This document shows, in pieces, positions 11,001-53,200 of a stretch of DNA of 59,462 nucleotides. The translations under genes and the position numbers were made by a program. Under the pieces are notes generated by a model. That model made no database searches. It saw only the letters and a program-made list of their open reading frames with translations, and was not told the DNA's origin. Every line of letters starts with the position of its first letter. Within the stretch, counting starts at the first letter, position 1. Source of the stretch: Pocillopora damicornis (taxonomy: Eukaryota); assembly GCF_003704095.1 (NCBI RefSeq), contig NW_020846322.1, forward strand, positions 1 through 59,462, in the 5' to 3' direction.

Positions 11001-11655
11001 TCGTTTTAACAAACATAAACCTTCATAAACAAGTCGAAACGACGTTTCGCACCCTGACGTGACCCTAAGGGCGAAAGAAATAACTAAAGCCATTAATTTA
11101 AATGGATAGTTTAATGTGGAAAATACTAATAAAAAATTCTTAACTGCGTATTGTGATAAATTACCTGATCAGATCCAAAAATGCATCCAAGGTTCTCACA
11201 GGTTGTACTTCTTTCGTCCCAGTTTTTTCCTCGTCAGTTTCCCCAGGCCTGATGGCCACTACCAACACTATTCCAAGAATGACTGCCAAGATGGTCGTCG
11301 ATAAATAATAAACAAGAGCTCGTCTTCCAACACGGCCGGTAGCTTTCGCGTCAAGAGATGCCAACGCACAAATCAAGCTAGCCACAATTAAAGGAAGAAT
11401 CAGCATCTTCAGCATACTCATGAAAAGCTCGCCAGCGAATCCGATCAACATCAAAACCGTTTTCTTGTCTTCGACATCTTCGATGTTATTGACTGGTTCG
11501 TTGACGAGAGCTCCGATGACAAAACCGATCACGACACCAATGATTATAAGAACAAGCAACAAGTCTTTGCTAACTCGCCGCATACATCCTGAACAACAAC
11601 CACAGCACTTGCTCCCTCCTGTTGAAAAAACACCTCGGCCGTTTCCTTTCGCCAT
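5081..11655 (-). CDS. SLC1-family excitatory amino acid (glutamate/aspartate:Na+) transporter; 7 exons: 11655..11165, 9673..9631, 8809..8523, 8120..7887, 7253..7059, 6370..6236, 5291..5081
   Basis: Spliced translation gives [93 protein letters not shown] and [17 protein letters not shown]. All introns are GT-AG and phase-consistent. The start is taken at MAKGNG (11655); the exact paralog cannot be assigned. Confidence 0.93.
5747..5949. mobile_element. piggyBac-type MITE, family A (opposite orientation to 3680-3882)
   Basis: TTAA|CCCTTTAATTCCC...GGGAGTTAAAGGG|TTAA; internal sequence is the reverse complement of 3680-3882. Confidence 0.85.
6528..6912. mobile_element. Nested MITEs: family B copy (6659-6860) inserted at a TTAA inside an opposite-orientation family B copy
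   Basis: The outer element's GATTG-TTAA-ACAAATTCTCC is interrupted at the TTAA (6655-6658) and resumes after 6864. Confidence 0.65.
9401..9609. mobile_element. piggyBac-type MITE, family C
   Basis: ACCCTTTAACTCCC...GGGAGTTAAAGGGTTAA. Confidence 0.75.
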
Positions 11656-13303
11656 ATCTGCGCCGTACGAAATAACTTTGACTGGTTTCACTACTGTTTG
11701 GTCGTGACCTACTGGCTGTTTCAATCCTCTAGTGTAAAAAATACACCCCAAAACTTTTTAAATAAATGCAAATGCACCCACAATGCACTCAATTTCAACA
11801 ACCTCGGAGGCTTTTCGTTGGGTGAAACTCAAACAAACGGAAGCTATTCAGTGATCCGTCACGTGTCTTCATTCAAAGGGAAATCATAAGGTTCCATACG
11901 TTGCAACCAAAGGTACAGTGATATGTGAAGTAACATTCACAAGCGCGAAAATGAAAAATATGAAAGAATTTAGCAAAGGAGGAAAACAAACTGAAGCACG
12001 TGCAGAAGTTGTTTCAGTTTCCGCGCTCTCTGAAACCAGAGGCCGCCGTTTGGATCCCACCCCCATCCCCAGAGAATATTTCACTCTACCCAAGTCATTA
12101 CACATTAGTACAACACATCCTAAACAAAAGTTTTTTGAAGAGAGATGCCAGCCCAGCATTCCTCTCACGTGTTTGCCCTTCAGAAGGAAATTTCTTGGTT
12201 CTATGAGTTCGAAGAACAAATCTGCAATCATCGTGAAATAATTTGAAAGGATTAACATCGGGATCTTATCCAACGAGCTTCAGCAACAAAAGGCACGTAC
12301 TATCAAATGCAAAGTTATTTCCTGGGGCCTTCCCCACCCCCTCCCGCTGAGTTCCATCCACAGGGCATTTTAATTTAATGTTACCCAAATTGATACCGAG
12401 AAATGTTTGAAGAGAGGTTGAAGAAGACTGTAACTTATGCCTGGATCTCGAATTCAAATTCCCCGATAATACACTCTTATCAGGGCGTAGCCTAAAAGGA
12501 GGAAGAGCGTATTTAGAGCAGAAAAAGATAAGACAGAAAAGAAAGCACTCAAAGGCATAAAAATGACCCTGGTTTATCATTTGTTTTCTTTTCGTCTCTT
12601 CATTCAAAAGGCTGTTTTTCGCCGTATCGCTCTGCATGAGAAATTATTTAGATCTGCAGTAGAGAATTGGACATTGCAGTAATCTAGAAAATTTTTGGCA
12701 AAATTTCCGTCAGGAATTCAACTAAATAAACGTAACGCATTCTTGAGATTCACATAACACAAAATAAAGTTTCCTTTTTTCCTTTGCCCAACTAAAGCAT
12801 GAACATCTGACAAAATTACCGGAGGCGTTTTAAGCTCATGTCTCGAGAAAGCCAAAAAAAAAAAGTCCATCTGTTCAATTGTGAAAATACCACGCGTTGC
12901 ATGTGTGAGCTCCAGCAACGTGAAACTCCAGCCGGAAGGTCATCTACATAACACACTATCTTAGTATTTTTGTGGGCGCTCTCAAATGTTTCCGACGAGC
13001 GTCTGTGCAATTTTTACAAGGGAAGTGCCCATCGGAAAAGTAAGAGGGGATGACAACATAGTGCTCATACTTCGCCTGTCAAATTACTTTTGTTTTTAAA
13101 TAACCTACAAGTTTCCTGTAGTAAAACAAAAGGAGGAAAAAAAGGAGCGTGAACTTGGCGGGAAACGCGCGAGCTAGGCGAGAGTCACGCGAGGGCACCN
13201 NNNNNNNNNNNNNNNNNNNNNNNNNNNNNNNNNNNNNNNNNNNNNNNNNNNNNNNNNNNNNNNNNNNNNNNNNNNNNNNNNNNNNNNNNNNNNNNNNNNA
13301 AAC

Positions 13304-34396: not shown

Positions 34397-34957
34397 TTAT
34401 TTCTTGGCCGCCTTCTTTGGTGATTTCTTCGCTGCTTTCTTGACGGGCTTTTTAGCTGCAGGCTTCTTCGCTGCGGGTTTTTTGGCCGCGGGTTTCTTTG
34501 CTGCTGGTTTTTTAGCAGCGGGTTTTTTCGCTGCTGGCTTCTTAGCGGCGGATTTCTTTGCTGCTGGCTTTTTGGCCGCTGGTTTCTTTGCTTTCTTCTT
34601 GGCGGCGGGCTTCTTTGGTTTGGCAGCAGGCTTCTTCTTTGCAGCTGGCTTCTTCTTCGGCTTCTTCTCCTTCTTTTCCTCCTTGGCCACCTTGAAGGAA
34701 CCAGAAGCACCAACTCCCTTGGTGTGGACAAGCTTGCCACTAGTAACACCCCTCTTCAAAGCCATCTTCAAGTGCGAGCCGACCTCACCAACCTTGTAGT
34801 TGGCCTTGATGTACTTCTCGATAGCTTGGCGGGAAGAGCCACTTCGCTCTTTCAACGCTAAGATAGCAGCTTTAATCATGTCGGCATAAGGTGGATGCTC
34901 AGCTGGCTTTTTGGGCGCAGCTGGCTTCTTTTTAGCGGGGGACTTTGCCTCGGACAT
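34397..34957 (-). CDS. H1: Histone H1 (MSEAKSPA variant, 186 aa)
   Basis: Complete H1 from the ATG at 34957; the ORF-track start at 35083 is a non-ATG over-extension. Confidence 0.97.
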
Positions 34958-36774
34958 GTTGTTTGCTGTAGAACTTTCGGAACTAGGAGCAATAATGATT
35001 GCTAAGAGCGCGCGCAAGGTAATATTATTCTTCGTGTACGGACCACCGAGGAAACAGAGTTGTCGCAAAATGGCGGCGCCCAAACTGTGTTAGTTTGTTT
35101 GACATTTCGGTTCATAACGAGCTAATTAAATAACATCAGATATTTTCTAGCCATAAAGAGCATAGCTAAGTTATCTCATAAAATGAAGGTGTAATGAAAA
35201 GTTTGATTTACTAAAATAAAGAATGAATTTTTAGGGTCAAAAGTGCAGAAAGCATGAAGGTTCAAACGAAAACTTTGAATGAATGATGAAAGGAGTTTTG
35301 TTTGAGTCACTTTTCAATAGTATATTAAATATCATATGAAAGAAGAAGTCCCTAACTTTGTAATTGTTTGAGAAAATGAACATTTTGATGCATATTCGAA
35401 GGCAGAACGGCCTCTAAACTCAAACAAGAAGAACAAAACTACAACATCCGCCATTTGTGATATGTGACTCACCTGGACGAATGGTATAATGTTAAATGTC
35501 CCGACTGAAGAAAATGACTCGAAAATAGGTCTTACTTTTGTAGGAAACTTTTTAAAAATTAACAGCGATTGAGCAAGTTTCTGTGCATAGTTTTTTTGGA
35601 TTTGCTTCGTTACGGATCAGCCAAACCAGTTTTTGCGTGAATTGGTCGCGCGCTCTCGATCATAGGGCAAGATCGGAGTCAACTTTGAGAGTATTCTTAA
35701 AATATGATTTCAATGGATTATTCACAAAGCAAAACATCAAAACCAGTTGGCGATGTAATATTCTTACTTAACCTGCAGTAGGTTTTTTATACGTGAGATA
35801 TGTGAAGTTCAGAAGTAAGAGCAGTAATAGACTAGATGTAAACAGTCCAGTCAATTGTCGATCGATTGAGAGTTTATGACGCAAAGAAATACGAAGGCGC
35901 GGGCTTATTGTCTAACTAACTTAAAGTTTTTATAAATCATAAAATTACGTTAGGAATGTAGCCTAGATTTTTATAGCATTTGGAGCAATGGGCTTTTCGT
36001 TGCATATTCAAAGGCATGGCAGTCTCGAAATTTGAACACGAAGAACAAAACAACAGCGTCCGCCATTTCATAGTTGACCTCGATAAGACCTGTGCTAAAT
36101 TTCTCTAGTAAGAAAATGTAGTTTATATTGTAAACTTATATTTTATGAGACATCTGAGTTAAGTTTTTAATTAAGAAACCGATTGGAAAAATGGCGAAAC
36201 ATTTCAGTTAGCCCCGATGATTTGCATAATACTAACGCCAAAATCAAAGGGCGAAGCTCATTTAATCACCACTTGCATATATTTGCATTAAAATCTAGCG
36301 CGTCGAGTAGGTAGGCTGCTAAGAAAAGCTTTGAACTCCGGAGATCTACTGTATATGGATCACGTTTCTGGAATAAATCAGCGTTTGGGCAGACAATATG
36401 TGATCGAGCAGTTACCGTTGGTAAATTGAAAAGAAAAAAAAAACACTGGCTCATTAAAGCGTTTATGTTCAGTGTGACATTTTTTTAAAATAAATCATGA
36501 CTACGAGGAGTGATAAAAAGTTAGTACGCTTTGGTTATATAGGGAGCGAAATAACCATTGTTTTCATATACTGTGCAGGGTGTTAAATCAGAAAATGTCT
36601 ATAAATGAACTTGCCGCAAAAGTCGCGCCCTTAGTAAACGTGTTAACATATTTTGAGTTGCTAATGATATTTACTCCAGAGAATTTGGTTAGTAGAAGCT
36701 CATACAATTGGTCATTGCTTTTATTCATGTGGTGGCTCCTAAAAGAGCCGTTTTTGATTTGAAGCGAAGTGCAC

Positions 36775-37829: not shown

Positions 37830-40800
37830 CTAGCGTCTTGAATGCGCAGCGGGAGCAGTATTTCCTAACAATGTTCGCAAACGAACAATTTCTTCTTGGT
37901 ATCTGCAATATAAAGAGAGAAGGATGAGAAGCCTAAATGAAGCAAATATATAGCTTCGTCCCCACTTCAATCCTGTCCCCCGCTTCCCTCCCGTTCCCCC
38001 CCCCCCCACCCCCACACACAAACACACACACACACAGGAGGGTGATGTCTTTGCTTCATCAGTACAATCAGTTTGTTTCATCAGCACCTTCTAATCAAAG
38101 GAGGGAAAAATATTCTTAGGCCAATAATCAAGGCAAGGTTATTCTCAATAGATGATCAGTTGTACCTTTTAAGATTTGTATCTATGTAGTGCTGAAGGCG
38201 CGCAAGTTGTTCTTCCGCCATAATACAACGTGTCATCAGTGAAGCGCGCTCACTTTCCAGGTCTTGCTAAAGGGTAAAAAAACCAACGATGTAAAGTATA
38301 TTTAATACGCTTCAAGATTGACCCGAAAGATTTCAGCAGTTAGGCCACAATATTTGTCGCCCTTTTTTTCAGTCCACCAGAAACCATGAAATGATTGTTT
38401 AGTAAGAGAGTAAAACAGCAAAAATAAACAACAAAGGAACGAAGATGGGTAAGGATAAAAAAGATTGACTGGGATTGACAAGCTAGTTTTTCGAAACCAG
38501 CAGAAGTCATCGTTATTTCGCTACCTGGGTATTCAGTGTGAATTCGCGGAGTTGCTTTCGGAGGTAGCCCCAACCCATCTCCACTGTTGCCTGACCTGCT
38601 GGTAACAACCTGGCAAAGAAAATACTCCTTTAAGAAACCTAATAATGTACATGAAAAAAATGCGCGCTTCTGATTGGCTAAAACCGAGTGTATTCTCATG
38701 TAACACAAGAGCAAAGTTGTAACACGAGTGCAAAGTTACAAATAGCACGCACACACTATCAAAATTTACTGTGATGTTTTTTCATGTACTTTACTAACAA
38801 ATAATAACATGATTTCTCTTGTAGTTTGGCGTTAAGAAGCACTCGTAAATTTTCAAAGACTACAAATTGCACTTGCCCTGCGGGCTCAAACAATTTTGTT
38901 CTCTTTGAAAAATTTTCTCGTGCTTTTTAACACCAAATTTCACCCAAAACATGTTATTACCTATACTTTATTGGATTAGACTTATCAGAAATCCTGGAAG
39001 GAGCACATTAAACTCACAGTTGATCCGGTTGCTGGTCATCCGCTGTAAAACGCGAGGTGTTGGAGGCCAACTGGAACAAAGTGAAGAATATAAAAAATCG
39101 TAATAAAATGCTTAGTTGTTACAAGCCTGATTTCAGCGCTACCTGAACAGTGTACGCTTCATGCTTGTAACTGAACGGAGCAATTGGACATTACGCGTCT
39201 TGCTTGTAATTCAACAGTGTACTTGGACAGTACGCGTCATGTGCAAGCGTACTTCTTGTGGCGCAATTCGCCGAGTTAACTTTTATTATTCTATGAAGAC
39301 GTATAAACCGATGAATAGTTTGTTTCTCTAATTGTGTAATAGCTTTGATTAATTGTTAACACGACTTCGTGTAGTCCTATATTCGTTAATCACTCGCATT
39401 ACTAAAGGCCGAACTGGACTTCACCCGGTCCTATGACCATTACCAACTGTAATGGCCTTCTTGGAATGGCCTTGTTTCTGTCACAGTCGATAGGGTTTAC
39501 ACCGACAGCTTTAATTATTGCCTTACGAATATACGAAGAATTGGTAAAAAATTCATAATGTGAGCCATTCAGAGATTTGAAAAAAAAAGGACAAAAAAAA
39601 TTCTATGTCAATGGTACCTTTTGTCTTAGTTCATCATTATTTCGTTTTAATTCTTTGAGATCCGCCGTCAGTTTCGCAATTTCACGACTCTATTAAAAAA
39701 AGAAAACAAAATACGGAGTTATTGACGGGGAAGAATACGCCTGCTCTCAGTTGTTTCACAAAAACATTGCTGACAACAAGAAACTAACCTGGGCAGTCTG
39801 CAGTTCAGTCTCTGAAGGCAAGTACAAACTAGCTTGGTTAGTCTGTGGCACTGACTTTGCTTCTTTACTTTCAATGTCGTACCGTAACATCCTAAAATAA
39901 TAACAAAAAATATTTAAATCATGAACGAAGATTATTGGAAAGGGGGGAATTGTACCCGTTTTTTTTAAGGGGGAGGAGAGAGAGGAGCATTTATTGTAAT
40001 TGTGCGCACCTGTAAGCTGAAGAAAGATTATCGTGCTTTTGTACCAAGTCTCTTATGGTAGCTTTCAATTCTCGCAGTCTGCTCTCCAAGGCTTCTTCTT
40101 TTTTCTCGTGTGATTCTCTGATTTGTCTCACCATCATATCAATGTACCCCTGAAATGACTCCACTGAAATCTGCCTCTCGTTAACCTTTCCACAGAACTC
40201 CTGTGGGTAACGAAAAGGAATGTTATAATCGAGACGTTGTTTGAGCCCATAGGCTGTTCATCGGCATGTTTCTGATCCTTAATCCTCAGGGTTATAAAAT
40301 AATTAGAAAATAATAATATGTCCTGTTGTCTAAGAACCGACCAGGAATGATGCAACTTTCCCTGCAAAAAAGAGTTTACGAGAGGTTTCTTGAAGATTTG
40401 AAGTTGAAACGGGTGCGGCGGTTACCACTCTCGTCAACTATCGTCAATATTCGTTCTCTCTCAGCAATTTTCGTCAATTCTTACTCTCGCGATATGACTC
40501 TCATTATGTTGGTTTGGAGAAATTGGTATCGGATCGTTTAGTAATCCCATAATGGATATTTTTCTTTATTCTCGTCACTTTTCTACATGATATTGTATAG
40601 ATACGGATATAGTGGAACCTAATCATGGGGCTTCCTGAAGACCACTTAAAATGTCCTCCGTGTAAATGTTCCATCAATAAAGGTAACTGATACAAATTTC
40701 GTGTCCTTTGGATGACGGTGTCCCCTAAATACAACGAGAATTTAAAAAGTTCTAATAAATATTTCTCACCGCAATATCATGAATATACTGCTGGAGTCTG

Positions 40801-43800
40801 TTGGTATATTCCGCGCTGAGCTCTTTAAGGCGCAGGTCCAGGTTGTTACTTTCTTCTTGTAAACGGTGCCTCTCCCCGTTGGCAGAGATCAATTCCTTTA
40901 TAATGCAACAGAATTATATAACATCAGTTACATTACTGAAATGAAAATAAAAATGAAAGGCCCTGTTTTTGAGTCCTAACAAGGGTGATCGCGTTGTGCT
41001 CAATAGAAACAGCACAGTGCCTCTTTTCCGCCAGAATTGGAGAGCATTCCTTCATTTCGAAAACCGAGAACTTAACGTAAAAACAATTGAACCGCTCGAA
41101 GCGCGGGAAAACGCGGGTGACCAACTTGCGATCGGTGTAAGTTTTGAATCTGATTGGTTGAGAAAGTGGCAGACGTCACGGACCATTCACAGAGCAAACT
41201 AAAGCAAAACTAACGTGATCTGGTATCACACTGGTTCTGCTTTACTTCGCTTTGTAAACTGAGTTGCTCAAAGAACGATATGGAAAAGCCACTAGGGCTT
41301 TTAAGAGTAGAATCTTATCCACGGATGGAAACCATCTCGTAGCCTTTGCTGGTTCTTTTAAGAAGGAATGGATTTCTTTAAATTTTTCCTTCAAAAATCG
41401 TGCCCCAACAATAGAGGCAATAGACTGAACAGAAAGAGTATGAGGCGTTCCTAATTTATCAGAGTCAAAGTCTGCCTTTCTTGAAGATAGATGTCCCCTA
41501 AATCATTTTCCCAGAGGTAAGCTATCACAAACTATTACTCGAGCAACAAAAACATTACTTACAGAAGACTGAAGGGCTAATTTCCGCTGAATCACCCGAA
41601 GAGATTCCTTGGAGTCTTTCAGCTCTTGAGTCAATTTGGATCTAAAGAAACAAATCTTTATGATTAAATTTTACACAAAGTAGATCCCTATCACTGAGAA
41701 CACCCTCAACCCTTTATATCCTGACATCTGTATGCATATTTTTCATACTTTTTCCATGCGTTTTCTATGGTACTAGTAATGAGAATTTGTTCAACAGTCG
41801 AGAGCTTCTTAAGGTTGTGATCATTTCCTTTATTCTCATGACCTTAATGTGTGAGTCAGGGGCGACATTGTAAGGAGAAATTAGAGACTAGTCTCTCTTG
41901 GGGGTTGAAAGTTAAGGTTTATGAAAAACTAGTAGTTGGAGACCAAATACAAGAACAGGAAAAGCCATATACATTCTATCTTCCAACTTGACCAGTTCTC
42001 TTTGATGCTGAGTCCTGAGAACCTCCACCCGTCCTTCTCGTTGTTGGCTGTTTTGAAATAACTGTAATAACAAAAAATGAAACTGTTAGCAAACAACATA
42101 GGATGTCTAACAGCCCTTCAACTGCCTGCAATATCGGAAAGGTAATTCTCCCACTTGATGCCAACATATTTCTCCTCCAGTTTGTCCTGTGAACTTGATT
42201 TTAAATCCAAAAATTACTCCCTGGTTAATAAATTTCTCCTCTCTCAGTAACTATCAGTTTGCTCTTTAAAATAGCAGGAAAATTCAAATAACGTTCACTT
42301 CTGGGAGTAGGGACAGCAATCCAACAGAATTTCTTAGCTAAAACGTTTTGGCAGAAACACTTTTGGATAGATGAATAACACGCAAATTATCTCAGTGAGC
42401 AAGAGGTTAAATCCTTTGGACTTTTGGATCAAATATACATTACCTGTTTTTCAAGTTCGAGCTTCTCGGACTGCAAGGAAAGCACACTTTTGGACAAATC
42501 ATCCTGTATTGAACAGATAGTCAGAGAATCAAGCCATATTAACTACTGCACACATCGTTACATGATCAATTTGAAAATCAAACATGAAGCAACAAAGTTT
42601 GAATTGAAACCTGGTTTAGGGAAAGAACAATAAAAGGTCATGCTACCTTCTCACGGAGAGAGCTCCTTGAAAACTTGCTGGCCAACCTTCTAAGTTGGTC
42701 ATAATACTCCTAGAAACAAAGAAAACATCTGATATTATTATCGTGTTATTTCATTTCATGCTCCTTTTGAACTGAATATAGAGGTCAGATTCTTTGAATT
42801 TAGATGTTCTTTACTTCAAAACTACGACCCTAAAAAGGACTGCAGTTGGTAACAGTGGCATTGGTCTTGACAACCTGAGTGGGAGTCGCAACTCTTAACT
42901 ATGATGATTTCCAACACTCATGGCCAAGAACTTCCCTCATAGGTTCAATTTACATAAACTTACAATTCTTTTAACCATTTCAGCTGATCAGCCTAAAGTT
43001 GGTGCTTATACAGGAAAATTGTGCCATCGGAATTATACCAGCAACAACTTTAACAACTGCACCAGTAGCATGCAGATCAGGCCAGTGTAGCATGTAGACA
43101 AAAAGTGGCTTAGTTCAACTACCAGTTCTCTGTGGCTGAGTTGCTAGTAGAGCACACAAACTTGAAATTGGGGAGCAAGTACTCAGTATTCTCTAAGTGA
43201 AAATTATAGTTGCCATCAATGAAAGAGATTTGTACCCCTCGCAATGCCTGTACCTTATCAACCACTCTAACTCTAAATCAAACATGGTCGGCCAGATAAA
43301 CAATTGTGAGCATGTAAAACTAATGCAACCCAATAAGATCCCTGCTATTGAATGGATGATTACACAAAATATTCATTTTCAATGGGAGAACATGGATGCT
43401 CCTGGTTTTAAATAACATATTATTGTAATAGTCAGGTTAATCTTTAGACAACAAGAAAGTAAAATAAAGTGTTTGTTAAATGTCCTCAACCTTCATTGTT
43501 TCAAGCTCCACAGCTTCTTTATCACTCTGTAGTTTTTCCTTTGTGTTGAGCAGCGTCACAAGTTCCAAACCCAACTCTTCGTTTTTGGCCACCTTATAAA
43601 AATATAAAAAAGATTATTTAGCATAAAATTGAAATTATGTAGTAGCTTTGTGCAAGTATAATACATGGAATCTAAAAATAAAAAAGATAAGGTTAAAGAC
43701 CTGACTGGGTCATTGTATAATTTTCTCAGAAGGGACATTTTCTTTTCAAAGTGCCTCTCTTGACCAAGGAGTAATTGGGTACAAGGAAACTTTCACTGAA

Positions 43801-46800
43801 ATCCTGGGGGAAGGGGTAAGATTCTGATGGACTGGGACCTATCCTCCTGTGTTACTTCTTAGTCCCTTCATGCCATTGAAACCATGCAGGATATCATTTT
43901 CAGGAACTCAGATAATTATTTTGTGTGCTTTTGTCTTTTAATAGCAGTCCCATTCTGCATAACTCTTGATCAATCACTCAACTCCATCTTTCAACCATCT
44001 AAGAATCAGGCTCCTCAGGCCTGACCAGGTCCATTGTGCAAGCAAGCTAAATTTCCTCACAGCATCTCATACCAAGTTTTTGCATGACATCAAGTTTTTG
44101 CTTGACACCAATTTTTTGATGTACCGATCTTGTTCAATTGTGGGAATGATTCATTACAAAGCTGGAAATTGATAGAGGAACCATTTAATTTATACTCTAA
44201 AATGCTAGGGGATGATTTACAACATCTCCATCATCTCATTTTAGCCTGATAATATGTTTGAGTTAGAGTGGTTGGTTGGGTACAGGGATTCTGTGAGAAG
44301 TACAAATTTCTTTCATAGAAGGCTACTATAATTTTTACTACGAGAATGCTGAACACTCGCTCTCCAAGTTTGTATGCCCCACTACCAACTCAGCCACAGA
44401 GAACTGGTTGGTGCACTATGAACAATATCCTACCTCCTTTTGATAGTCTGCAGTCAACTGAACATGACTGGTCTTTAAAGCAATGTACTCATTTGCCAGC
44501 TCTTTATGTTCTGTTTCCATGACAGCAAGATCTTCTTTACTTGCTGTCAAGTCAGCTTGAGCCTTATCCAAAAACATCTGAAGTTCCATGACATTATTTT
44601 CAAGAGCAAGCACCTGAAATGAAGGGGAAAAATCAGTGATTTTCTCACATCCTGTTCAGTAATTGACACTGTATCTCAGAGACTTATCATTATAATTTTA
44701 AATTTAAAGGTTTTCTGCCCTACCAACTGAGGCACAGAGAACTTGTTGGTGCTCTTATAAAGCCAAATGACAGACACTATAATAAGCTTTTAATGATAGA
44801 GGATCTGTATGGGCCATATGACTCATGAATACAAATTATACAATCTGTAAGGATCATACAGAGTGAAAACTCAGGTTGACAAGTAGTACGACATTGGACA
44901 TGGATGCAATTACACAGACCTGACCTGGATGTTATTGTTGTAAAGTTTTTGCAGGTGTGATTCAGATGACACAATTCATGTGTGAGCAATATTGTAAGCT
45001 GATCAGCTTTGATGGTTAAAAGAATTGCATTATGTAAATTGGACCTAAGAAACCCAAGGAAATTCTTAAACACATTTCACCAACAAACAAAGTACAAGTT
45101 AGAACAAAATTGCTTCTTGAGGTTATTTATTGAAGAGTACTGCATGGTCTCTACCTACCTTATTGTTGAAGTCAAAATTGACAGCCTCTGCATCTTCCTG
45201 GATTCTATTATTTTCCAACTGAATGTCAACCAATGTCTTAGAAATCTAATGAGTATCAAAAATATAAAGTTTTCATGACAAAATAAAGTCCCTCAACCTC
45301 AGTTTTAAAAAACGGTTTTTCAATAATATCCCCTCCCCTGATCTAGTTATCTAAGCACTTTTTCAATACAAAATATTTAAAAGATATAGCACCAAAAATA
45401 GCAAAACTGGTATTCTAACATGCTTTCTGATCAACTAAATTGTATCTCTTCATTTTCTTTCAAAAAAACTTAGTACTTAAAAATTATCTAGGATACTATA
45501 ACAGAAGTTTCAAAAACGTTTTTCAAACTTTAAGGTAGTTGTCAATGGTGAATTAGACAGCTGTGCAGACAATGAATGAATTATATCAATCAGATCCCTT
45601 CAATCTTGACAATTGTTTAAAAGCTGTAGTGGCCCACTACAAAAAAAATTAAAATTTGACTGAAACCCCTGATACAAGAAGAAACCAAGGAAAAATAGAA
45701 GAAGAAACAAACCTGTAATTTTTCTTCTTCACTAGAGATCAACTTTGAAGAGAGCTGTGTCTTTGAATTCATCAGTTCACTGTATCTTGTCTGTATCTCG
45801 TCAAGCCTTGTGTATAACTGCTCATTTTTCTCCTGTAACTTAAACTATAGCCACAAAAAAATACAATAATAACCAGTTAGGGGTGAGACTCAACTACTGT
45901 AACATAAAGTCTGACATTATGGTTTTTAGTCGCATCTGCACTGAACCCTTAAATTCCAAAGGTTCAATATATTTGTACCAGTAATTGTTCCCTACAGCTG
46001 ATAAGATTGTCTTTTCTCACTGTGTATAATGGATAATGTACTGATATAGTAAGGAGAAATTAATAAGTTTTTGTCACTTCCTTAATCAGAAGGATTGTCG
46101 TTAAGGACTAACATTCCCATCATTAAAATCATTAAGGGATTTTCCTCTTGTCTGATTAGTCCTTGTGATCACTTTAGTTTATGTTTTCAACACTCAAGCA
46201 AAAGTGCTCAGCTATCTTCCAAGTTCAACTTACATTTTCCTGTGTGAGCTGTGTCATTTGATCTTTCAGTTCCTGTGCCCTGCCTGGAGTTTCTCCTGTA
46301 CCTAAGCTCCTACCACCACCTGACATTTGGATGTCATCTTGAAGTTTCATAATTAGGGTTCGATACTGACATAAGAGTTCCTGTGTGAAGACAAAAGACA
46401 ACCTATCAATCACAATGTCAGCTAACACACTCTTCTAAATAACTCAGAGAGTCAAGACCATTTCCCACTTAGTCTCATTTACACATAGAAGATTCTTGAA
46501 AAAGTCTCTGAAAATTGTGTGGTTTGGTGGTCATGTGAAGGTACATGAAATGTTGAAAAGGAATGTTCTTGGTGATGATCACAGGTGTTTTCCACAAGCT
46601 CAGCAGAGGTCAGCATTTTTGTGAAATGGTGACCACCACTTGGATGATCTACTCACTGTGACTGCTTAGAACAGTCCCATTTGATTTTGCACCTGTCGAC
46701 TTGCACATCCTAGCTTCACTTCTCACCGCTTCAAATCAAAAACTTAAATTTTCACATAAACACACACACCTTTGCCATAAAGTCATTGATAACAGGATAA

Positions 46801-49800
46801 TTTTGTACTTGAGCAAGCTGCCCAGCAGTTCTGAGTACAGTTGAAAGACTGGAACTATCAGAAGGGTGCAGTGTTACCAACGCTTTTGTTTTGCAGTTTC
46901 CACCAAGTGCATCTTTTAGTAACATGGTCACTTTAGACTCTCTGAAAAGTCAAAAAATGAGCACTACAACAACAGTTTAAGCTAATGAAGTACACATTTT
47001 TAAACTTATTGTCACCATGAACATAGCATTAGCTCAGATATAACTCAGCTAGTCTCTTTTTTTTTTCCATTCCTTAGCTAGCATCACAACCAATCATTTT
47101 TTTTCTCCTGAATAAAGAAAAAAGTGTTCGGAGAAAAAAATCTCACCTATCCCCCAGTCCCTCTCCCAAGCATTTGTCAGGTTTCGCTGTCAGTTTACCA
47201 AAACCCATTCATATTCCTCCGTGGAGAGACATGGAGTGAGATGCACAGTTATCCATCTTACCTAACCCCAACCCCCCATACCAACAGTTTCTTTGATTTT
47301 CCTAACATTTCACCAGTACAAATTTGTACTCCCACAGGTGGAGAGAGAGAGAAGCACTTTATTTTATTAAAGAATACAACATGATGACCCAAACAGGTCA
47401 GACAGAGACCTGCTGATCCAGAGAACCACACACCTGGCAATCACTCAGCCAGGTGTTTCTCTCAGGTACAAAAGTCAAACACTCACCCATAATTGATGAC
47501 TCTTGTAGACTTTGGAGCTGCAGCTAATTGAGCTACAAGATTCCCAAATGCAAGTAGAGACCTATTTAAAGTAGGACCTTCCCTCATGCGCAGCTGTGTA
47601 GGGTCTTCAGCTAGTTTTTCTGCTCCAGGTAATTTCACCACAAGAAAACGAGATGTAAACAGATCCTGACCATCTTTTGGAACCTTTATGGGCAAAGAAA
47701 AGCTGATTCAGGAAGAATAAAAGCATGTAACTTCTCTCTACAATAAGACTGCTAAATCATGAGATTAAAGGAAATGATAACCAACCTGGGAAGCTTTGAT
47801 TGTTAAACAAATTCTCCCTATCAATATGAAAGGAAATGTGTACAAAAAAATATGGAGAATATAGATACTGATGTCAGGGTGTACAGGGTTAAATTTACAT
47901 ATATGTGACAAATATACAATAAGCAAACCCATTGCCACCATATCTCCCACATAGAGGATCCTGTATGCTTAGATTTGATATCTAAGAGTGTTTTCAAGTC
48001 CTTGAACCCTTTAACTCCCAAGATCTTGTTAGTAAATCTCCCTACTGTTTGCCAAACAATTCTCATCACGTTATGGTGTGGAGAATTTGGTATTGGATCA
48101 ATTAGTAATCCCATAATTGATATTTTTCTTTATCATCATCACTTGTCTGCATGACATTGTATAGATATAGTAAGGAGAAATTCTATCTTAATCACTCACG
48201 GGAGTTAAAGAGAACTTGTGGATTTAAAAGGAAAATATTTCAGGGTAAAAACTTGTTGTTTAATAGGTGAATACTCAAGTATGGTCATAACTTTTTCACA
48301 CACTCACCATTGACATGTCAAGTGAGAAGAAAACTGTGGTTCTTGTTTCAAAATCTGTTTGTCCCATGGCTCTGTTTGACCACCCCTGACGAAATACATT
48401 GGTACACTCTGCTGCATCAACAACCCTCTTGTAAGTCGCATTCTGCACATGCACTCCATTGCGTCCATCTTCCACAACATCAATATACTTGTCTGATTAT
48501 AAATTAAATATGATTAAGAAGTTAGTATGGTACAGTATGCCTCTATAACATCTGATTACAGAGCTATTGATTCTCAAACCTTGAGTATGAGACTCATGTT
48601 TACTATTAATGAATTAAATCTTACACACTCATCCAGAAACTATTATTTCTCACACATTTAAGTTTCTTACTTAAACTGTTGACTTTGAGAAAGACAACTC
48701 TTGAATTATAATATATAGATTTAGCCTAGCCTACAAGCAGAGCTCGCATTTTTTTTACCACATGTCTCAAGGGCACAACACCTTGCCCCGGCCAGGACTA
48801 GAACCCGAGTCATCCGACTCAGAGCCCAGTGCACTGACCACTGGACTACTGGACAAAGCCGTGGTGTTGGCGTGCCCATGGTAGAGTTGACCATCAAAAT
48901 CAAAGACTGCTGTCCAAAATCCCACTCTTTGCCAGTAAATAGACTTGAGAGCTCTGCACTGTACTGTGCTGTAGTGAATAAGGATAGACCCATATCGATA
49001 CCAAATATTCAATACCGGCAATACCAAGGTCTGATCAGACAATAATGCTATTAATGTAAAGTATCAAAACTTTTGATATTGCATGCGACCTGCCCATGCT
49101 TTGTCTCACACAGGTGACCATTTGCTGGTAAGGAGCCAAAAAGATTTTGGGCTTGAGTTTGGGCAATGAGCACCTCAGTGTACCAGTCTGAGTGGCTTGC
49201 AAGTGTTGCAAGAGTGAACTCATTGATGACCGTCAGTTTCAACTTAAGCACAATTGGTTTAAGTTTTTGACTGTCTTGTTGATGCTTCTGTGGAGTATTC
49301 ACAAAACATAACTTAACAGTGCAAGATAACCCCATATCAAGTTAATCAAAACATGTGACTTATCATATAACTTTATGACGTCACAGTATCGATATCAGTA
49401 GCGATATGGAAGAAAATCGTGAGCATCACTCTCGGTAATTCGTATCTACTCGGAAAAACCATTTCGGCCCATCCTTAGTAGTAAATCATGCAGACCTACC
49501 TTCATGTGGTAGTAGCAGCAGATCTCTTACTTTTTCGTTAAAGACCTCGTAAAACTGTACAAACACAACTCCGTCATTCGGATCATTTCTCTGTATTCTT
49601 TGTTCCCTTCGAGCTGACCTTTCACCTTTTACTCGAGTAAAAACAGAATTTATTATCAGGGGAATCAACCCAGCCTTGGAATTTTTCTCCCCTGCAAGAG
49701 AGAACGATTTTCCAGATCCTGATTCTCCAAAAACCAAGAAACAAACATTGTAACCAGCGATGAAGAGTTCTATCAGTGGCAGCAAGGAGTCTTTGAAAAT

Positions 49801-49947
49801 ATCATAGGTCACTGATTCCGATTTGTAAACAGATCCAAATATGTGACCAGTTCCATCACTTGCTTGCACGCGGGTACCCGAAAGATTTAGAGAATAGTGC
49901 TCTCCCCGTATGGGTGGTCGAATACGAGCTAAAACCTCCACATTCAT
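37830..49947 (-). CDS. CCDC78: Kinesin-like (degenerate motor) domain fused to CCDC78/DUF4472-type coiled coil, ~914 aa, 21 exons
   Basis: Exons: 49947-49500, 48492-48308, 47683-47487, 46941-46770, 46380-46234, 45844-45713, 45245-45159, 44613-44434, 43592-43491, 42709-42647, 42503-42444, 42061-41973, 41641-41563, 40895-40770, 40200-40010, 39891-39789, 39689-39618, 39070-39018, 38609-38525, 38266-38166, 37902-37830. All are GT-AG and phase-consistent (2745 nt, no internal stop). Motor motifs: ARIRP, GYNVCFLVFGESGSGKS, FYEVFNEKVRDLL, NRSLLAFG, YGESKVTMLLKDALGGNCKT. CCDC78-like motifs: EEEKLQISKTLVDIQLENN, WGYLRKQLREFTLNTQ, LESERASLMTRCIMAEEQLARLQHYIDTNLKRYQEEIVRLR. Confidence 0.85.
38636..39446. 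repeat. Two unclassified interspersed repeats (~38636-38967 and ~39092-39446) in CCDC78 introns
   Basis: Motifs such as GCGCTTCTGATTGGCT, GTAACACGAGTGCAAAGTTAC and repeated ACAGTGTAC/GGACAGTACGCGTCATG resemble common coral non-autonomous repeats; family not assignable. Confidence 0.4.
41708..41915. mobile_element. piggyBac-type MITE, family B
   Basis: AACCCTTTATATCC...GGGGTTGAAAGTTAA; internal match to 6659-6860. Confidence 0.65.
48005..48212. mobile_element. piggyBac-type MITE, family A
   Basis: AACCCTTTAACTCCC...GGGAGTTAAAG; internal match to 5747-5949. Confidence 0.7.
48740..48862 (-). mobile_element. tRNA-derived SINE head
   Basis: Reverse strand has A-box-like TAGTCCAGTGG and B-box-like GGTTCTAGTCC, followed by GGCCGGGGC..TGTTGTGCCCTTG; no complete cloverleaf. 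Confidence 0.6.
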
Positions 49948-50218
49948 TTAGAAATTTGTGAAAGTATTGTACGTTTGCAAAGACGATTATTGACCGCCAT
50001 TTTTAAAGGTAACAACTGTAGCAGCCTGGCCTGTTGAAAATCGCGAGGCCACCAAGTGGGAATATAACATTGATGTCAAGAACCTTTTAGACGAACTTGA
50101 ATTCAAAGATGAAGGAAACTTCGAGCAAGGAAAGAAAAAGGACGTTTTACTGTAGCGTAGCCTTGGAACTTTACCTCTTATAATCATTCAAGTAGCACAT
50201 TGGTGAATTTTCGCGACA
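49948..50218. promoter_or_regulatory. Bidirectional promoter region, kinesin-CCDC78 / REXO1
   Basis: The two start codons face apart, 271 bp apart; YY1-like CCGCCATTTT at ~49995. Confidence 0.7.
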
Positions 50219-53200
50219 ATGTTTCCTACAGCAGGGTATTTCCGGAGTACAAACTGTCCATTCTTTGTTCACGGTCTGTGCCACAGACCGTATTGCCATT
50301 TTCGTCACAGTAAACCCGGTACGTGGAATTTTAACACTTAAGAGGTAGAATTTGTACCTAGGGATACATTGCCCTGGACGCTAGAGTCAGACCTTTCTTT
50401 ATCTTTAAATCTTAGGGTGAAATTTAGTAGATAAAGAGATTCTTTGTGGAGTATCGAAATTAAACTTATTACATGAACGAAATCAGTGCGGGTTACTTGA
50501 GTTGTTTGGGATAATTACAGAAGCTATTAAGCGCTTAATTGTAGTCAAATGCCTTTGAAATATGGTCAATTACCGTCTAACTCTCAGGGATGATTAACTC
50601 GAAAGTTCTCCCCACAATTTCAAAAGGAGAATTGACAACTGTATTGACTAGAGACTTTTATCAAGCTGTAACACAAAATTCTCTTTCACAGCTACAAGAT
50701 TGGGTAGCACACAACTGACAAGTTTGCATGGAAGCCAGGAAAACTGTCTCTATTTCCCAAATGTAGCCCCTTGCACCCTTATTTAAATACAGTCAAACTT
50801 GTATTAAGTGGCACTACATTAAGTGGTCGCCCTGTATTACGCAGTGGATTATGAAAGTGTCTAATTTTCTTCCTCTTAGTCATTGTAATTTTCACTTCTA
50901 TTAAGCTATCACCTCAATTAACTCTCAGTACTCCCAAGATCTGATTGTTAATCCTCCCCTCTAGCTGCTACTTTACAAGAATTTAGTATTAGATCAAGAT
51001 AGGAACTTGTTCTGATAAGTTTGAGTATCCTCATTACCTGTTTGCTGGATGATGTATGGATATTATAGAAAGAAGTTACTTGGAAATCATCTCTGGGAGT
51101 TTAAGGGTCACGAGATAAAGGAAATAAAGGAGAATTTGTTTAACAATCAAGATTATCTTGATTTCATGATCATGTTCTTAATTCTCTTGTCCACAATGTT
51201 TGATTCAGGGGTGATATTGTTAGGTGAAATTAGAGGATGTTAGCAGTTAAACTTGAGCCTCAAGATGACTTGTGAGTCTGCAATAATATTTTTAAGTCAG
51301 AATTGATTTTTGGCAACCGTTCTAATACTCAAGGTTGCAATTGATGACTGTGAAGAAATCAATGAAAAGCTGGTCACAGAACCCTGAAGTGTGCATTTTC
51401 TCTCTCACACAGGGCTCAAGGCTTCAAAGAGCAGAACTTCACCTCATAAGAATAATATTGAACTACAATCCAACAATGTTAAGACTACAACACCCAGTCC
51501 AGATGTATCTGATGGAGATAAACAGCAGGCTGACATTAGAACAACTCCACCAGAAGCAACAAAAAGGAAGGTAGAAACAGTGGACAATACAAGTCCTGAA
51601 ATTGAAAATAAATTTACCACACAAACAAACACAGCTTCTAAAAGGGGCATTCTGAATAGAGGTGATGAAGAGCAGAATATTCAGGATGATCAACTTTTTA
51701 GTGTCAAAGAATCTTTGCCCAAGACCAGCTTGGATGTAACTGAACCTGTGACTAGCTCACATATGGTCAGCCCCAGTGATGAGGGCATGGAAATGTCTGA
51801 ATGGGATCGGAATGATTGTGAACAACCTATTGCTTCTCTGACTGATGAGGAGATTAAAATCATTGGGTTGACCACAGTTTCTTTACCTGGTTGCAGTCAA
51901 ACTGCTGTTAAAAGTACCAATTTAGGACAAAATTCAACTTCAAATGCTTCTAGTTGCATTGTTTCTCAAAGTAATTCCCCAGTTGTGGGAGGATTTTTTG
52001 AGAATGACACTGAAGGAGAAGGCCAAATGAAGGGTAACTTGATTGATGTTAATGTTACTGAAACTTACATTGCTAAGGAGGCAAGAATTGCTCAAATCAA
52101 GGCTGACAGTTTAGCGAAGAGACTTAAATCCAAAGCTGTGAAGGAGAAAAATGATTCATCATTGGTTTTGGAAAGTAACTATATAGAGAAGAAACAGGAA
52201 CTCACTGGAGGGAAAGAAAAATATGACGTGACTCAGGAAAAGCCACAAAGACGAAAATCTGTTCAGCTTCAAATATCTGTTGAAGGAGATGAAGACATGA
52301 AAGAGTCTTTGGATATACCTGCAAAGAAAAGAAAATCCCAGCAGTTGCCATGTGCAACTAGCTCTTCACTTCACTCTTCTGCACTAAAGAGCGAGGATAG
52401 TAACAAGGCTATGAAAAGGAAAGATAGCATTTCCAAACAGGAATATAAACTACATGAGTTGTTTTTGTCTGCATCAAAGTCACTGGAACACACCATTCAC
52501 TCTAGTAAATCACCTATGGATAATGATTCTAAAGACATAAAAAAAGGCAAAGCAAATGCATCAAAAAGAAAACTAAGCCTTGCAGAGACTGAAATAAATT
52601 TCTTTGGTCCTTCTAAAAGGCAAAACAAAACCGAGAAAATGGAAAAGCAGAAGAAAGTTAAGGAGGAAATAGCTGCTGTTAAAACTTTGAAACCCAAAAA
52701 ATTAGAAAACAGAGGATTGGAAAAGAAGAACAATTTTCAGAAAACCAAACTTCAGACAAGTGCCAAAGGTTTAACTATGTCAAGTGAAGATAGTGATTAC
52801 ATGTGCAGCCCTGCAGGAGGTGACTCAAGCCATGAGGAGAATGATTCACTGAGAAGGATTTGGAATAACTTTGAACTGCCACAAGACAACCTTGTGATAG
52901 AGAAGGATTCACAATCACCTGTTAAAAAACAGGCACAAGAATCAACAAGGAAGAGAACATTGTCCTCTGTGTCTAACGACTCTGATGTGATTAAACAACC
53001 ATCTATGGCTGATGCATTAGGACTTGGGAAGAAACAGCGAGTGGCACATATGCCCAGTCATGTAAGTTAACCATTTGCACCCTTTCATCAGTATGCATAT
53101 TCTTCACACTGTTCTCTATAAGGAGAATTTGTGTAACAATCAAGGGCTTCTTTAGTGGGTGATCATTTCTTTTATTCTCATGACCTTTAACTCCCATGAG

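Follow-up and report, generated by a model that had tools for sequence, protein, structure and literature searches.

The CCDC78 gene of the coral Pocillopora damicornis, located in the window analyzed here (the whole 59,462-nucleotide stretch of contig NW_020846322.1), is a single-copy, expressed orthologue that has the ancestral kinesin-headed architecture; its identity and architecture, as originally proposed, are very nearly certain. The motor-like head carries altered switch loops, and the best overall explanation, to which we assign a probability of roughly 0.6, is that it would be a non-hydrolysing, microtubule-binding head that anchors a module at the distal tip of cilia.

Several lines of evidence establish the gene model. 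The gene lies on the minus strand and consists of 21 exons, every border of which is AG/GT in spliced mapping, and these encode an ORF of 914 codons (Table 1). An in-frame TAA is found directly 5' of the ATG at 49947. The ORF is identical to the transcript-derived protein P0214 at 908 of 914 positions (99%); single exons and P0214 served as queries for database searches and folding, and the joined 21-exon protein was used for the frame check and local alignments. RNA contigs from three independent studies (runs X1, X4, and X14) join eight of the exons via GT..AG introns, and in all three studies exon 4 of the motor is spliced to exons 5-8, which encode the coil and DUF4472. A single contig of 3117 nt covers motor and coil, plus 1501 nt further 3'. 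The original prediction had posited one phase-consistent 21-exon gene joining a kinesin region to a coil and had suggested examining RNA across the motor-coil exons; the single transcript recovered refutes a two-gene reading.

Table 1. Features of the Pocillopora damicornis CCDC78 gene in window coordinates
Feature	Position (strand)	Residues	Content	Evidence
Transcription unit	37830..50013 (-)		whole unit; 5' end near 50013	X4 RNA contig (5' end)
3' UTR	roughly 300 nt below 37830		end approximate	
Exon 1 (CDS part)	49500..49947 (-)	1-149	start codon, RIRP (N4), P-loop	profile scan, RNA
P-loop / Walker A	49728-49705 (-)		GESGSGKS	
Exon 2	48308..48492 (-)	150-211	degenerate switch I	profile scan, RNA, HMMER alignment
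Switch I position	48361-48335 (-)		QTDFETRTT	
Exon 3	47487..47683 (-)	212-276	altered switch II, switch II helix alpha4	profile scan, RNA
Switch II position	47635-47618 (-)		KLPGAE	
Exon 4	46770..46941 (-)	277-334	L12/alpha5 (SKVTMLLKDALGGNCKT), alpha6, neck-linker motif (N324, P326, N329)	
Exon 5	46234..46380 (-)	335-383	neck helix, short low-confidence linker	RNA, P0214 mapping, model
Exon 6	45713..45844 (-)	384-427	coiled coil to DUF4472 start	RNA, P0214 mapping
Exon 7	45159..45245 (-)	428-456	DUF4472 first part (ISKTLVDIQ)	profile scan, RNA
Exon 8	44434..44613 (-)	457-516	DUF4472 second part	profile scan, RNA
Exon 9	43491..43592 (-)	517-550		P0214 match, AG/GT borders
Exon 10	42647..42709 (-)	551-571		P0214 mapping
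Exon 11	42444..42503 (-)	572-591		P0214 mapping
Exon 12	41973..42061 (-)	592-620		P0214 mapping
Exon 13	41563..41641 (-)	621-647		P0214 mapping
Exon 14	40770..40895 (-)	648-689	conserved R680, L681, Y684, D687	P0214 mapping, conservation
Exon 15	40010..40200 (-)	690-752		P0214 mapping
Exon 16	39789..39891 (-)	753-787		P0214 mapping
Exon 17	39618..39689 (-)	788-811		P0214 mapping
Exon 18	39018..39070 (-)	812-828		P0214 mapping
Exon 19	38525..38609 (-)	829-857	conserved LRKQLREFTLNTQ	P0214 mapping, conservation
Exon 20	38166..38266 (-)	858-890	C-terminal CCDC78 motif (ERASLMTRCIMAEEQL, LQHYID)	P0214 mapping, conservation
Exon 21 (CDS part)	37830..37902 (-)	891-914	QEEIVRLR; stop TAG 37830-37832	P0214 mapping

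An annotation or assembly artefact, in which two adjacent genes (a kinesin and CCDC78) were merged or the head is a decaying relic domain, has a negligible probability. All that we found in its favor is the X14 contig, which runs 3.2 kb upstream of the gene, an extension compatible with a neighbour gene that is head-to-head with CCDC78 and starts ~270 bp away. In addition to the splicing of exon 4 to the coil exons, the same colinear architecture is present in orthologues of many phyla, and the coral and bilaterian heads are 32-42% identical, which is no lower than the identity of the central coil. Thus, the two-gene, artefact, and relic-domain readings are rejected on RNA and conservation evidence.

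In a Pfam scan, four exons each match the kinesin profile PF00225 on their own (E 8e-22 to 1e-4, profile positions 37-314); PF14739/DUF4472 is matched by two exons that lie 3' of these on the same strand (E 4e-8 and 5e-10). The corresponding matches in P0214 are 2.6e-52 for PF00225 (aa 30-311) and 7.9e-28 for DUF4472 (aa 421-527), the latter with 97.6 bits against a Pfam gathering score of 26.6, which exons 7 and 8 each exceed as well. In the protein, a kinesin head (aa 1-335) is followed by a neck linker and then by a coiled coil of ~580 aa that includes DUF4472 and a conserved C-terminus; LQISKTLVDIQ lies at residue 426, and residues 863-900 form the C-terminal CCDC78 motif. A profile search of the 234-Mb assembly returned only two DUF4472 matches, exons 7 and 8 of this gene, and coral residues 365-905 are colinear with residues 4-533 of Xenopus laevis Ccdc78 (35% identity, E 7e-95). 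Because this is the sole DUF4472 locus in the genome and because of this colinearity, the gene is a CCDC78 orthologue, in agreement with the identity first assigned to it. By both sequence profile and fold, the head belongs to the kinesin superfamily: 145 solved kinesin chains match it at E<=1e-10 (HMMER), and the AlphaFold model of P0214, a check proposed at the outset, has a head pLDDT of mostly 84-94 and superimposes on solved kinesin motors with TM up to 0.90 and an rmsd of 2.8 A.

The kinesin-headed form is widespread. RefSeq uses the name CCDC78(-like) for proteins of ~900 aa with kinesin and DUF4472 domains from other corals, anemones, a sponge, molluscs, echinoderms, hemichordates, amphioxus, and Ciona, and unnamed proteins with both domains occur in choanoflagellate transcriptomes. 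Of the 25 best matches that were scanned, at least 13 contain both domains, and the same family assignment comes from a 230-member ESM Atlas cluster that is named CCDC78-like and has PF00225 in all (100%) of its members. This distribution extends from choanoflagellates to alligator. The suggestion that CCDC78 may descend from a kinesin is upheld in that the kinesin head is ancestral to CCDC78. The accompanying statement that the vertebrate protein has no motor holds only in part: it applies to Xenopus, mouse, and human, but CCDC78 carries a motor in sharks, rays, coelacanth, lungfish, caecilians, salamanders, and alligator. Nor is the architecture itself a discovery, as it is already known from the RefSeq names and from a published Tetrahymena kinesin with a CCDC78 domain. 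Given that databases already hold the kinesin-headed form for most animal groups and many vertebrates, the coral gene is an ordinary one.

The motor motifs of the coral head are unevenly preserved, and they lie where the original prediction had placed them, as do L12/alpha5 and both CCDC78 signatures. Walker A is intact. In HMMER alignments to the solved kinesins OSM-3 and KIF4, the switch I motif NxxSSRSH is absent, ETRTT standing opposite SSRSH with a 3-residue deletion that is common to four stony corals. In the same alignments KLPGAE stands opposite the switch II motif DLAGSE (DxxGxE), such that the Asp is replaced by Lys, as it also is in acroporids, and the Gly and Glu are retained. The L12/alpha5 stretch straddles the junction of exons 3 and 4. 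Since the switch I Arg, the switch II Gly and Glu, Walker A, and the neck linker are kept, the coral head may have residual or unconventional ATPase activity and motility.

This pattern of altered switch loops with a kept P-loop and kept microtubule-binding elements, initially noted in the coral alone, holds across the family (27 and 40 members). SSRSH was found in none of the 27 CCDC78-family motors first compared, whereas six control kinesins of other families are canonical. Among 40 members, the switch II Asp position is D in 15, E in 14, K in 6, R in 2, A in 2, and T in 1, and only 8 have R at the switch I Arg position. By contrast, the P-loop K is present in 40/40, with E in place of the canonical Q in 39/40, and the switch II Glu in 38/40. 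RxRP, the P-loop, NExxxDLL, L12/alpha5, and the neck linker all contain residues at least 90% conserved across the family, among them Y276, S279, T282, L284, G290, G291, N292, C293, T295, N324, P326, and N329. At the sequence level, CCDC78 kinesins thus conserve both the neck linker and the predicted microtubule-binding elements (alpha4, L12/alpha5). Walker A is invariant outside tetrapods; caecilians, axolotl, and alligator have a broken P-loop. We conclude that strong constraint acts on the P-loop, microtubule-binding elements, and neck linker but not on the switch I serines or the switch II aspartate; because these catalytic residues vary freely, selection is not maintaining the hydrolysis machinery.

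The family comparison started from an all-against-all HMMER search and from searches with full-length relatives. In a tree of 159 motor domains (LG+G4), in which the named kinesin families were sampled in part, the CCDC78 motors form one clade (SH-aLRT 99) that holds family members only. The kinesin phylogeny that had been recommended thus identifies the head as a distinct, ancient kinesin clade. Its family-wide switch-loop degeneracy appears to be new, and an inactive-looking CCDC78 head does not seem to have been described previously. Among the papers searched, "DUF4472" was absent and "pseudokinesin" occurred in one, in an unrelated context. A candidate counterpart of the clade is Wickstead's cilium-restricted "Kinesin-17", which was without functional data in 2010; other literature matches to "kinesin-17" are KIF17.

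Judged from these motifs, the CCDC78 head is probably non-motile or non-hydrolysing. It would still bind nucleotide and microtubules, hydrolysing ATP poorly or not at all, and would therefore be a static, strongly bound head and not a stepping motor. An active, unconventional plus-end-directed motor that walks to the ciliary tip, with other residues replacing the canonical switch residues, would account for the invariance of Walker A, the conservation of the neck-linker residues and of the switch II Gly and Glu, the switch I Arg in cnidarians, the normal predicted kinesin fold, and the N-terminal position of the head, as in plus-end-directed kinesins. We nevertheless consider it unlikely, given that the residues coordinating Mg and the gamma-phosphate (the switch I serines and the switch II Asp, which is Lys in the coral) vary freely. 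In addition, the first residue of the coral ORF directly precedes the position that aligns with kinesin-1 residue 8, so that a cover strand is almost wholly missing, and no motile kinesin is known to lack both switch motifs.

We therefore return to the non-hydrolysing, microtubule-binding head, for which published work on ciliate and vertebrate orthologues points to the ciliary tip. Vertebrate Ccdc78 and Ccdc33 are located in motile cilia at their extreme distal tip, bundle microtubules, and control cilium length; tip and deuterosome localisation and CCDC33 binding have been published for Xenopus, mouse, and human only. By analogy, we lean modestly toward a ciliary-tip role for the coral protein. 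Its long coiled coil, probably dimeric, would anchor a distal-tip module of motile cilia that would sit on axonemal microtubule plus ends with a CCDC33/C2D1-type partner, and the protein would help to set tip organisation and cilium length. The original prediction had instead envisaged that the protein serves centriole or basal-body amplification as a non-motile scaffold, as at deuterosomes, where vertebrate Ccdc78 was first described and which GFP-Ccdc78 still marks. Deuterosome-based amplification is a feature of vertebrate multiciliated cells, but the family predates animals, being present in choanoflagellates, and cilia tips harbour endogenous vertebrate CCDC78 as well as its ciliate orthologue. 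For these reasons the tip anchor is likelier, and the scaffold, in particular as an ancestral role, is quite improbable.

Taken together, these considerations allow a tentative joint reading, for which we would give somewhat less than even odds. Kinesin-CCDC78 would be an ancient, cilium-linked pseudo-kinesin family that lost hydrolysis before animals arose, kept nucleotide and microtubule binding, and, permanently in a strong-binding state, serves as a cap or anchor for axonemal plus ends. Stepwise decay of the head would have followed in vertebrates, with several losses (in ray-finned fishes, frogs, and most amniotes) and with tip targeting passing to the coiled coil.

The coral gene itself is an ordinary expressed ciliary gene, and the significance of these findings lies in the family. 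The view of CCDC78 has recently changed: it is now seen as a key organiser of motile cilia at their extreme distal tip, and its gene as a ciliopathy candidate. The paper behind this change took the kinesin domain to be a ciliate peculiarity absent from vertebrates, yet database records contradict this: as a rule, animals have the kinesin-headed form, which many vertebrates retain and in which the catalytic loops are degenerate throughout. This form offers a testable idea of how CCDC78 was originally attached to microtubule ends, and the vertebrate heads provide a natural series of decay and loss for asking what replaced head function.

Among known proteins, the closest counterparts are the RefSeq CCDC78(-like) proteins, which share with the coral protein the kinesin domain, DUF4472, the C-terminal motif, and the altered switch loops, and differ from it in lineage details only (the stony-coral switch I deletion and the Lys at the switch II Asp). 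Those of Porites lutea (P0213), Acropora palmata (P0215), Nematostella (P0021), Branchiostoma (P0023), and Scyliorhinus (P0223) have the same ~900 aa length, and the first 516 aa of the coral protein (exons 1-8) are 79% identical to Porites, 52% to Nematostella, and 38% to shark. Tetrahymena I7LVY1, compared here by its published description, likewise combines a kinesin with a CCDC78 domain but is a ciliate protein of 1066 aa; it is depleted from cilia without the CEP104/FAP256 cap protein and has been proposed to bind central-pair microtubules in the ciliary cap (PMC10522465, PMC12796433). Xenopus, mouse, and human CCDC78 (~440-560 aa) share DUF4472 and the C-terminal motif with the coral protein but are without the whole head, starting just after the neck linker of the kinesin-headed form, and motorless vertebrate CCDC78 has been reported to bundle microtubules.

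Vik1/Cik1, invoked earlier as a parallel, bind microtubules through a kinesin-fold domain that has no catalytic activity. This domain is C-terminal, is without a nucleotide site, and acts in a heterodimer with Kar3. The coral head is N-terminal, with an intact and conserved Walker A and a strong PF00225 match, so that the comparison is poor and a domain of the Vik1/Cik1 type is rejected. The slow or immotile kinesins KIF7/Costal2 (kinesin-4), KIF26 (kinesin-11), and NOD are functional parallels, in that their heads are used as microtubule- or end-binding modules instead of transporters, as proposed here for CCDC78, and KIF7 also organises a cilium tip compartment. The CCDC78 kinesin is not a kinesin-4, however: herring kif7, included as a control, falls outside the CCDC78 clade together with all other named kinesins of the partly sampled tree and, unlike the CCDC78 heads, has canonical SSRSH and DLAGSE.

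The region 37830–49947 is a multi-exon animal gene on the minus strand. When its open stretches were translated exon by exon and each was scanned against Pfam, four consecutive exons matched the kinesin motor domain (PF00225) and two exons 3' of them matched DUF4472 (PF14739), the signature domain of CCDC78 (table); the P-loop falls at 49728–49705 in translated exon 1, where the original prediction had placed it. Contigs from three RNA-seq runs of three studies (coral and marine metatranscriptomes) were aligned to 44400–49999. Seven GT..AG introns are identical in the contigs of all three runs, leading from exon 1 (49500–49947) to exon 8 (about 44432–44613), and a single 3117-nt contig reaches from ~66 nt upstream of the ATG to 1501 nt past exon 8. 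Thus, the motor and DUF4472 exons lie on one mRNA, of one gene rather than two. An in-frame TAA stands immediately upstream of the ATG at 49947, and orthologues found with HMMER begin at the same residue. Furthermore, a 914-aa protein (P0214), called on a 3.4-kb RNA-derived contig and retrieved with the Nematostella orthologue as query, is 99.8% identical to the exon 1–8 translation. Mapped onto the window, P0214 occupies 21 exons, all with AG/GT borders, with 914 codons and a TAG at 37830–37832, so the phase-consistent 21-exon ORF first read from the DNA is exact; genomic ORF and P0214 share 908 of 914 residues. The joined 21-exon protein served for the frame check and local alignments, and Pfam scans and AlphaFold were run on the exons and P0214. 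A low-depth contig of RNA-seq run X1 over 48893–49529 is unspliced intron 1, probably pre-mRNA or DNA carry-over.

By fold and profile, the gene belongs to both the CCDC78 family and the kinesin superfamily. Pfam places a Kinesin domain at aa 30–311 of P0214 (E 2.6e-52) and DUF4472 at aa 421–527 (E 7.9e-28). Behind the kinesin fold and neck linker lies a ~580-aa coiled coil orthologous to CCDC78, and residues 365–905 align colinearly with Ccdc78 of Xenopus laevis (559 aa; E 7e-95). Since DUF4472 matches in the entire 234-Mb assembly are confined to exons 7 and 8 of this gene, the coral has no second CCDC78. An AlphaFold model computed from an alignment of 40 family sequences has a confident head (pLDDT mostly 84–94, dipping in the switch I loop at aa 193–195) followed by long helices. 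The head resembles solved kinesin motors of many families (TM up to 0.90, rmsd 2.8 Å) and prefers none among them, in agreement with a sequence search of the PDB.

Exon 1, used as query in an exhaustive HMMER search, returned ~900-aa proteins that start at the coral protein's first residue, named in their sources "coiled-coil domain-containing protein 78(-like)", and at least 13 of the 25 best-matching proteins scanned carry PF00225 and DUF4472 together. Such proteins occur in cnidarians (Nematostella, Actinia, Porites, Acropora, Montipora), a sponge (Dysidea), protostomes (bivalves, gastropods, a chiton, a flatworm), invertebrate deuterostomes (sea urchin, starfish, crinoid, acorn worms, amphioxus, Ciona) and, as unnamed members, in two transcriptomes of choanoflagellates, relatives of animals. 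The ESM Atlas holds a 230-protein cluster of them, automatically named CCDC78(-like), and a kinesin carrying a CCDC78 domain has been noted in Tetrahymena (I7LVY1, a candidate component of the ciliary-tip cap; PMC10522465). Public databases already hold the gene and its architecture, and the literature reports them in part. A maximum-likelihood tree built from 159 motor domains, with the closest kinesins from a 1.8-billion-protein library as non-members, places all 26 labelled members within one clade of 28 (SH-aLRT 99); the clade's other two rows are one more family fragment and one divergent relative.

Both switches had been read as altered, and HMMER alignments to OSM-3 and KIF4 bear this out: ETRTT stands opposite SSRSH after a 3-residue deletion and KLPGAE opposite DLAGSE, GESGSGKS aligns with GQTGSGKT, and L12/α5 and the neck linker align residue for residue. 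As aligned, the head departs from kinesins in two catalytic motifs. SSRSH is absent from all 27 family members compared, from choanoflagellates to lungfish, with a TD[FY]G motif at the site instead; their switch II reads x-LPGAEKL, and six control kinesins (KIF14, KIF11, kif7, KIF6, KIF16B, KIN-12F) show the canonical motifs when aligned alongside. Judged from these motifs, loop degeneracy is a family trait, not peculiar to the coral. Among the 40 members scored, the residue at the switch II Asp site is D in 15, E in 14, K in 6, R in 2, A in 2 and T in 1, and only 8 have Arg at the switch I Arg site; the P-loop Lys is kept in all 40 and the switch II Glu in 38. The switch I deletion (48335–48361) is common to all four stony corals (also in P0213 of Porites lutea, P0215 of Acropora palmata and P0216), is absent from sea anemones and bilaterians, and could be a scleractinian marker.

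Conservation of at least 90% extends over the RxRP Arg, P-loop G74/E75/S78/G79/K80, NExxxDLL, P230, E233, L12/α5 from Y276 to T295, and neck linker N324, P326 and N329. Head identity between coral and bilaterians is 32–42%, equal to or above that of the central coiled coil, so purifying selection acts on the head, which is no relic. The kinesin fold is conserved, and its Walker A and microtubule-binding surface are intact; we infer that the residues coordinating Mg and sensing the γ-phosphate escape selective maintenance, so that the head probably binds nucleotide and microtubules without cycling. According to the accepted mechanochemistry of kinesins, a head unable to reach the ADP state remains strongly bound, which would suit an anchor, not a transporter. 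The main alternative, an unconventional yet active motor walking to the ciliary tip, has in its favour the conservation of the neck linker and, in cnidarians, of the switch I Arg together with switch II Gly and Glu; we consider it rather unlikely given the poorly maintained Mg and γ-phosphate residues. As to where an anchoring head would act, the original prediction proposed a centriole or basal-body scaffold. Deuterosomes are a device of vertebrate multiciliated cells and the family is present in choanoflagellates; an ancestral job at the axoneme tip is thus far more likely than one in centriole amplification. Published work puts the ciliate orthologue in a cap complex at the ciliary tip.

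The motor has been called "absent from vertebrate Ccdc78" (PMC12796433), and the original prediction took the vertebrate protein to be motorless. That generalisation goes too far: annotations of CCDC78 with a motor exist for sharks, rays, sawfish, coelacanth, lungfish, caecilians, salamanders and alligator. DUF4472-only proteins of ~560 aa, which begin directly after the neck linker position, are found in frogs (including Xenopus), turtles, birds, squamates and ray-finned fishes. In head-bearing tetrapods the Walker A glycine is replaced, giving SKKS, SRKS or SRKW (caecilians P0306 and P0307, axolotl P0309, alligator P0310), unlike in sharks, lungfish and invertebrates, which suggests further decay before loss. 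The tetrapod head seems to decay further and then to be lost in frogs and most amniotes, with a separate loss in ray-finned fishes. The alligator has predicted isoforms of 864 aa and, motorless, 616 aa.

A neighbouring gene (50219–55513, plus strand) lies head-to-head, ~270 bp from the CCDC78 start. The longer contig of RNA-seq run X14, which is unstranded, extends 3.2 kb upstream of CCDC78 and merges the two, suggesting a shared bidirectional promoter; the extension fits attribution to this neighbour. Introns of the CCDC78 gene contain copies of a dispersed repeat, seen as a 94-nt direct repeat (40510–40603 and 48074–48167, 87% identity). RNA depth peaks at 10–20 times exon depth in repeat regions (45896–46082, 47766–48326, 48701–48887), and contigs on the intronic repeat have many loose ends and opposite-strand joints; it resembles a mobile element that is transcribed and present in high copy, not a part of the gene. 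Two intact linker-histone H1 ORFs, in a stretch interrupted by many 100-N gaps, may belong to a repeated histone cluster.

Features located in the window
Feature	Position	Strand	Detail
Gpi1 (PIG-Q) GPI-anchor biosynthesis domain ORF	147–1313	+	
Sodium:dicarboxylate symporter (EAAT-type) exon	11161–11748	-	
Linker-histone H1 ORF	20568–21146	-	PF00538, E about 1e-30
Linker-histone H1 ORF	34397–35080	-	PF00538, E about 1e-30
DUF4472, exon 8	44419–44655	-	
DUF4472, exon 7	45126–45245	-	
PF00225 exon 4	46755–46949	-	profile 279–314
PF00225 exon 3	47486–47707	-	profile 220–277
PF00225 exon 2	48299–48496	-	profile 149–198
PF00225 exon 1	49489–49947	-	profile 37–143
Neighbour, CCCH-like first ORF	50219–50341	+	
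Neighbour, 559-aa ORF	51391–53070	+	no Pfam match
Neighbour, EloA-BP1 match	54911–55122	+	

In the literature searched, three points appear unreported: the family-wide loss of switch motifs with P-loop and microtubule surface retained, the monophyly of kinesin-CCDC78 motors, and the uneven pattern in which vertebrates have kept, degraded or lost the head. The comparison with Vik1/Cik1 made in the original prediction is weak, because the coral head keeps its P-loop and sits N-terminally. We propose instead that the closer parallel in function is with the immotile kinesins KIF7/Costal2, KIF26 and NOD, although the coral gene does not group with them.
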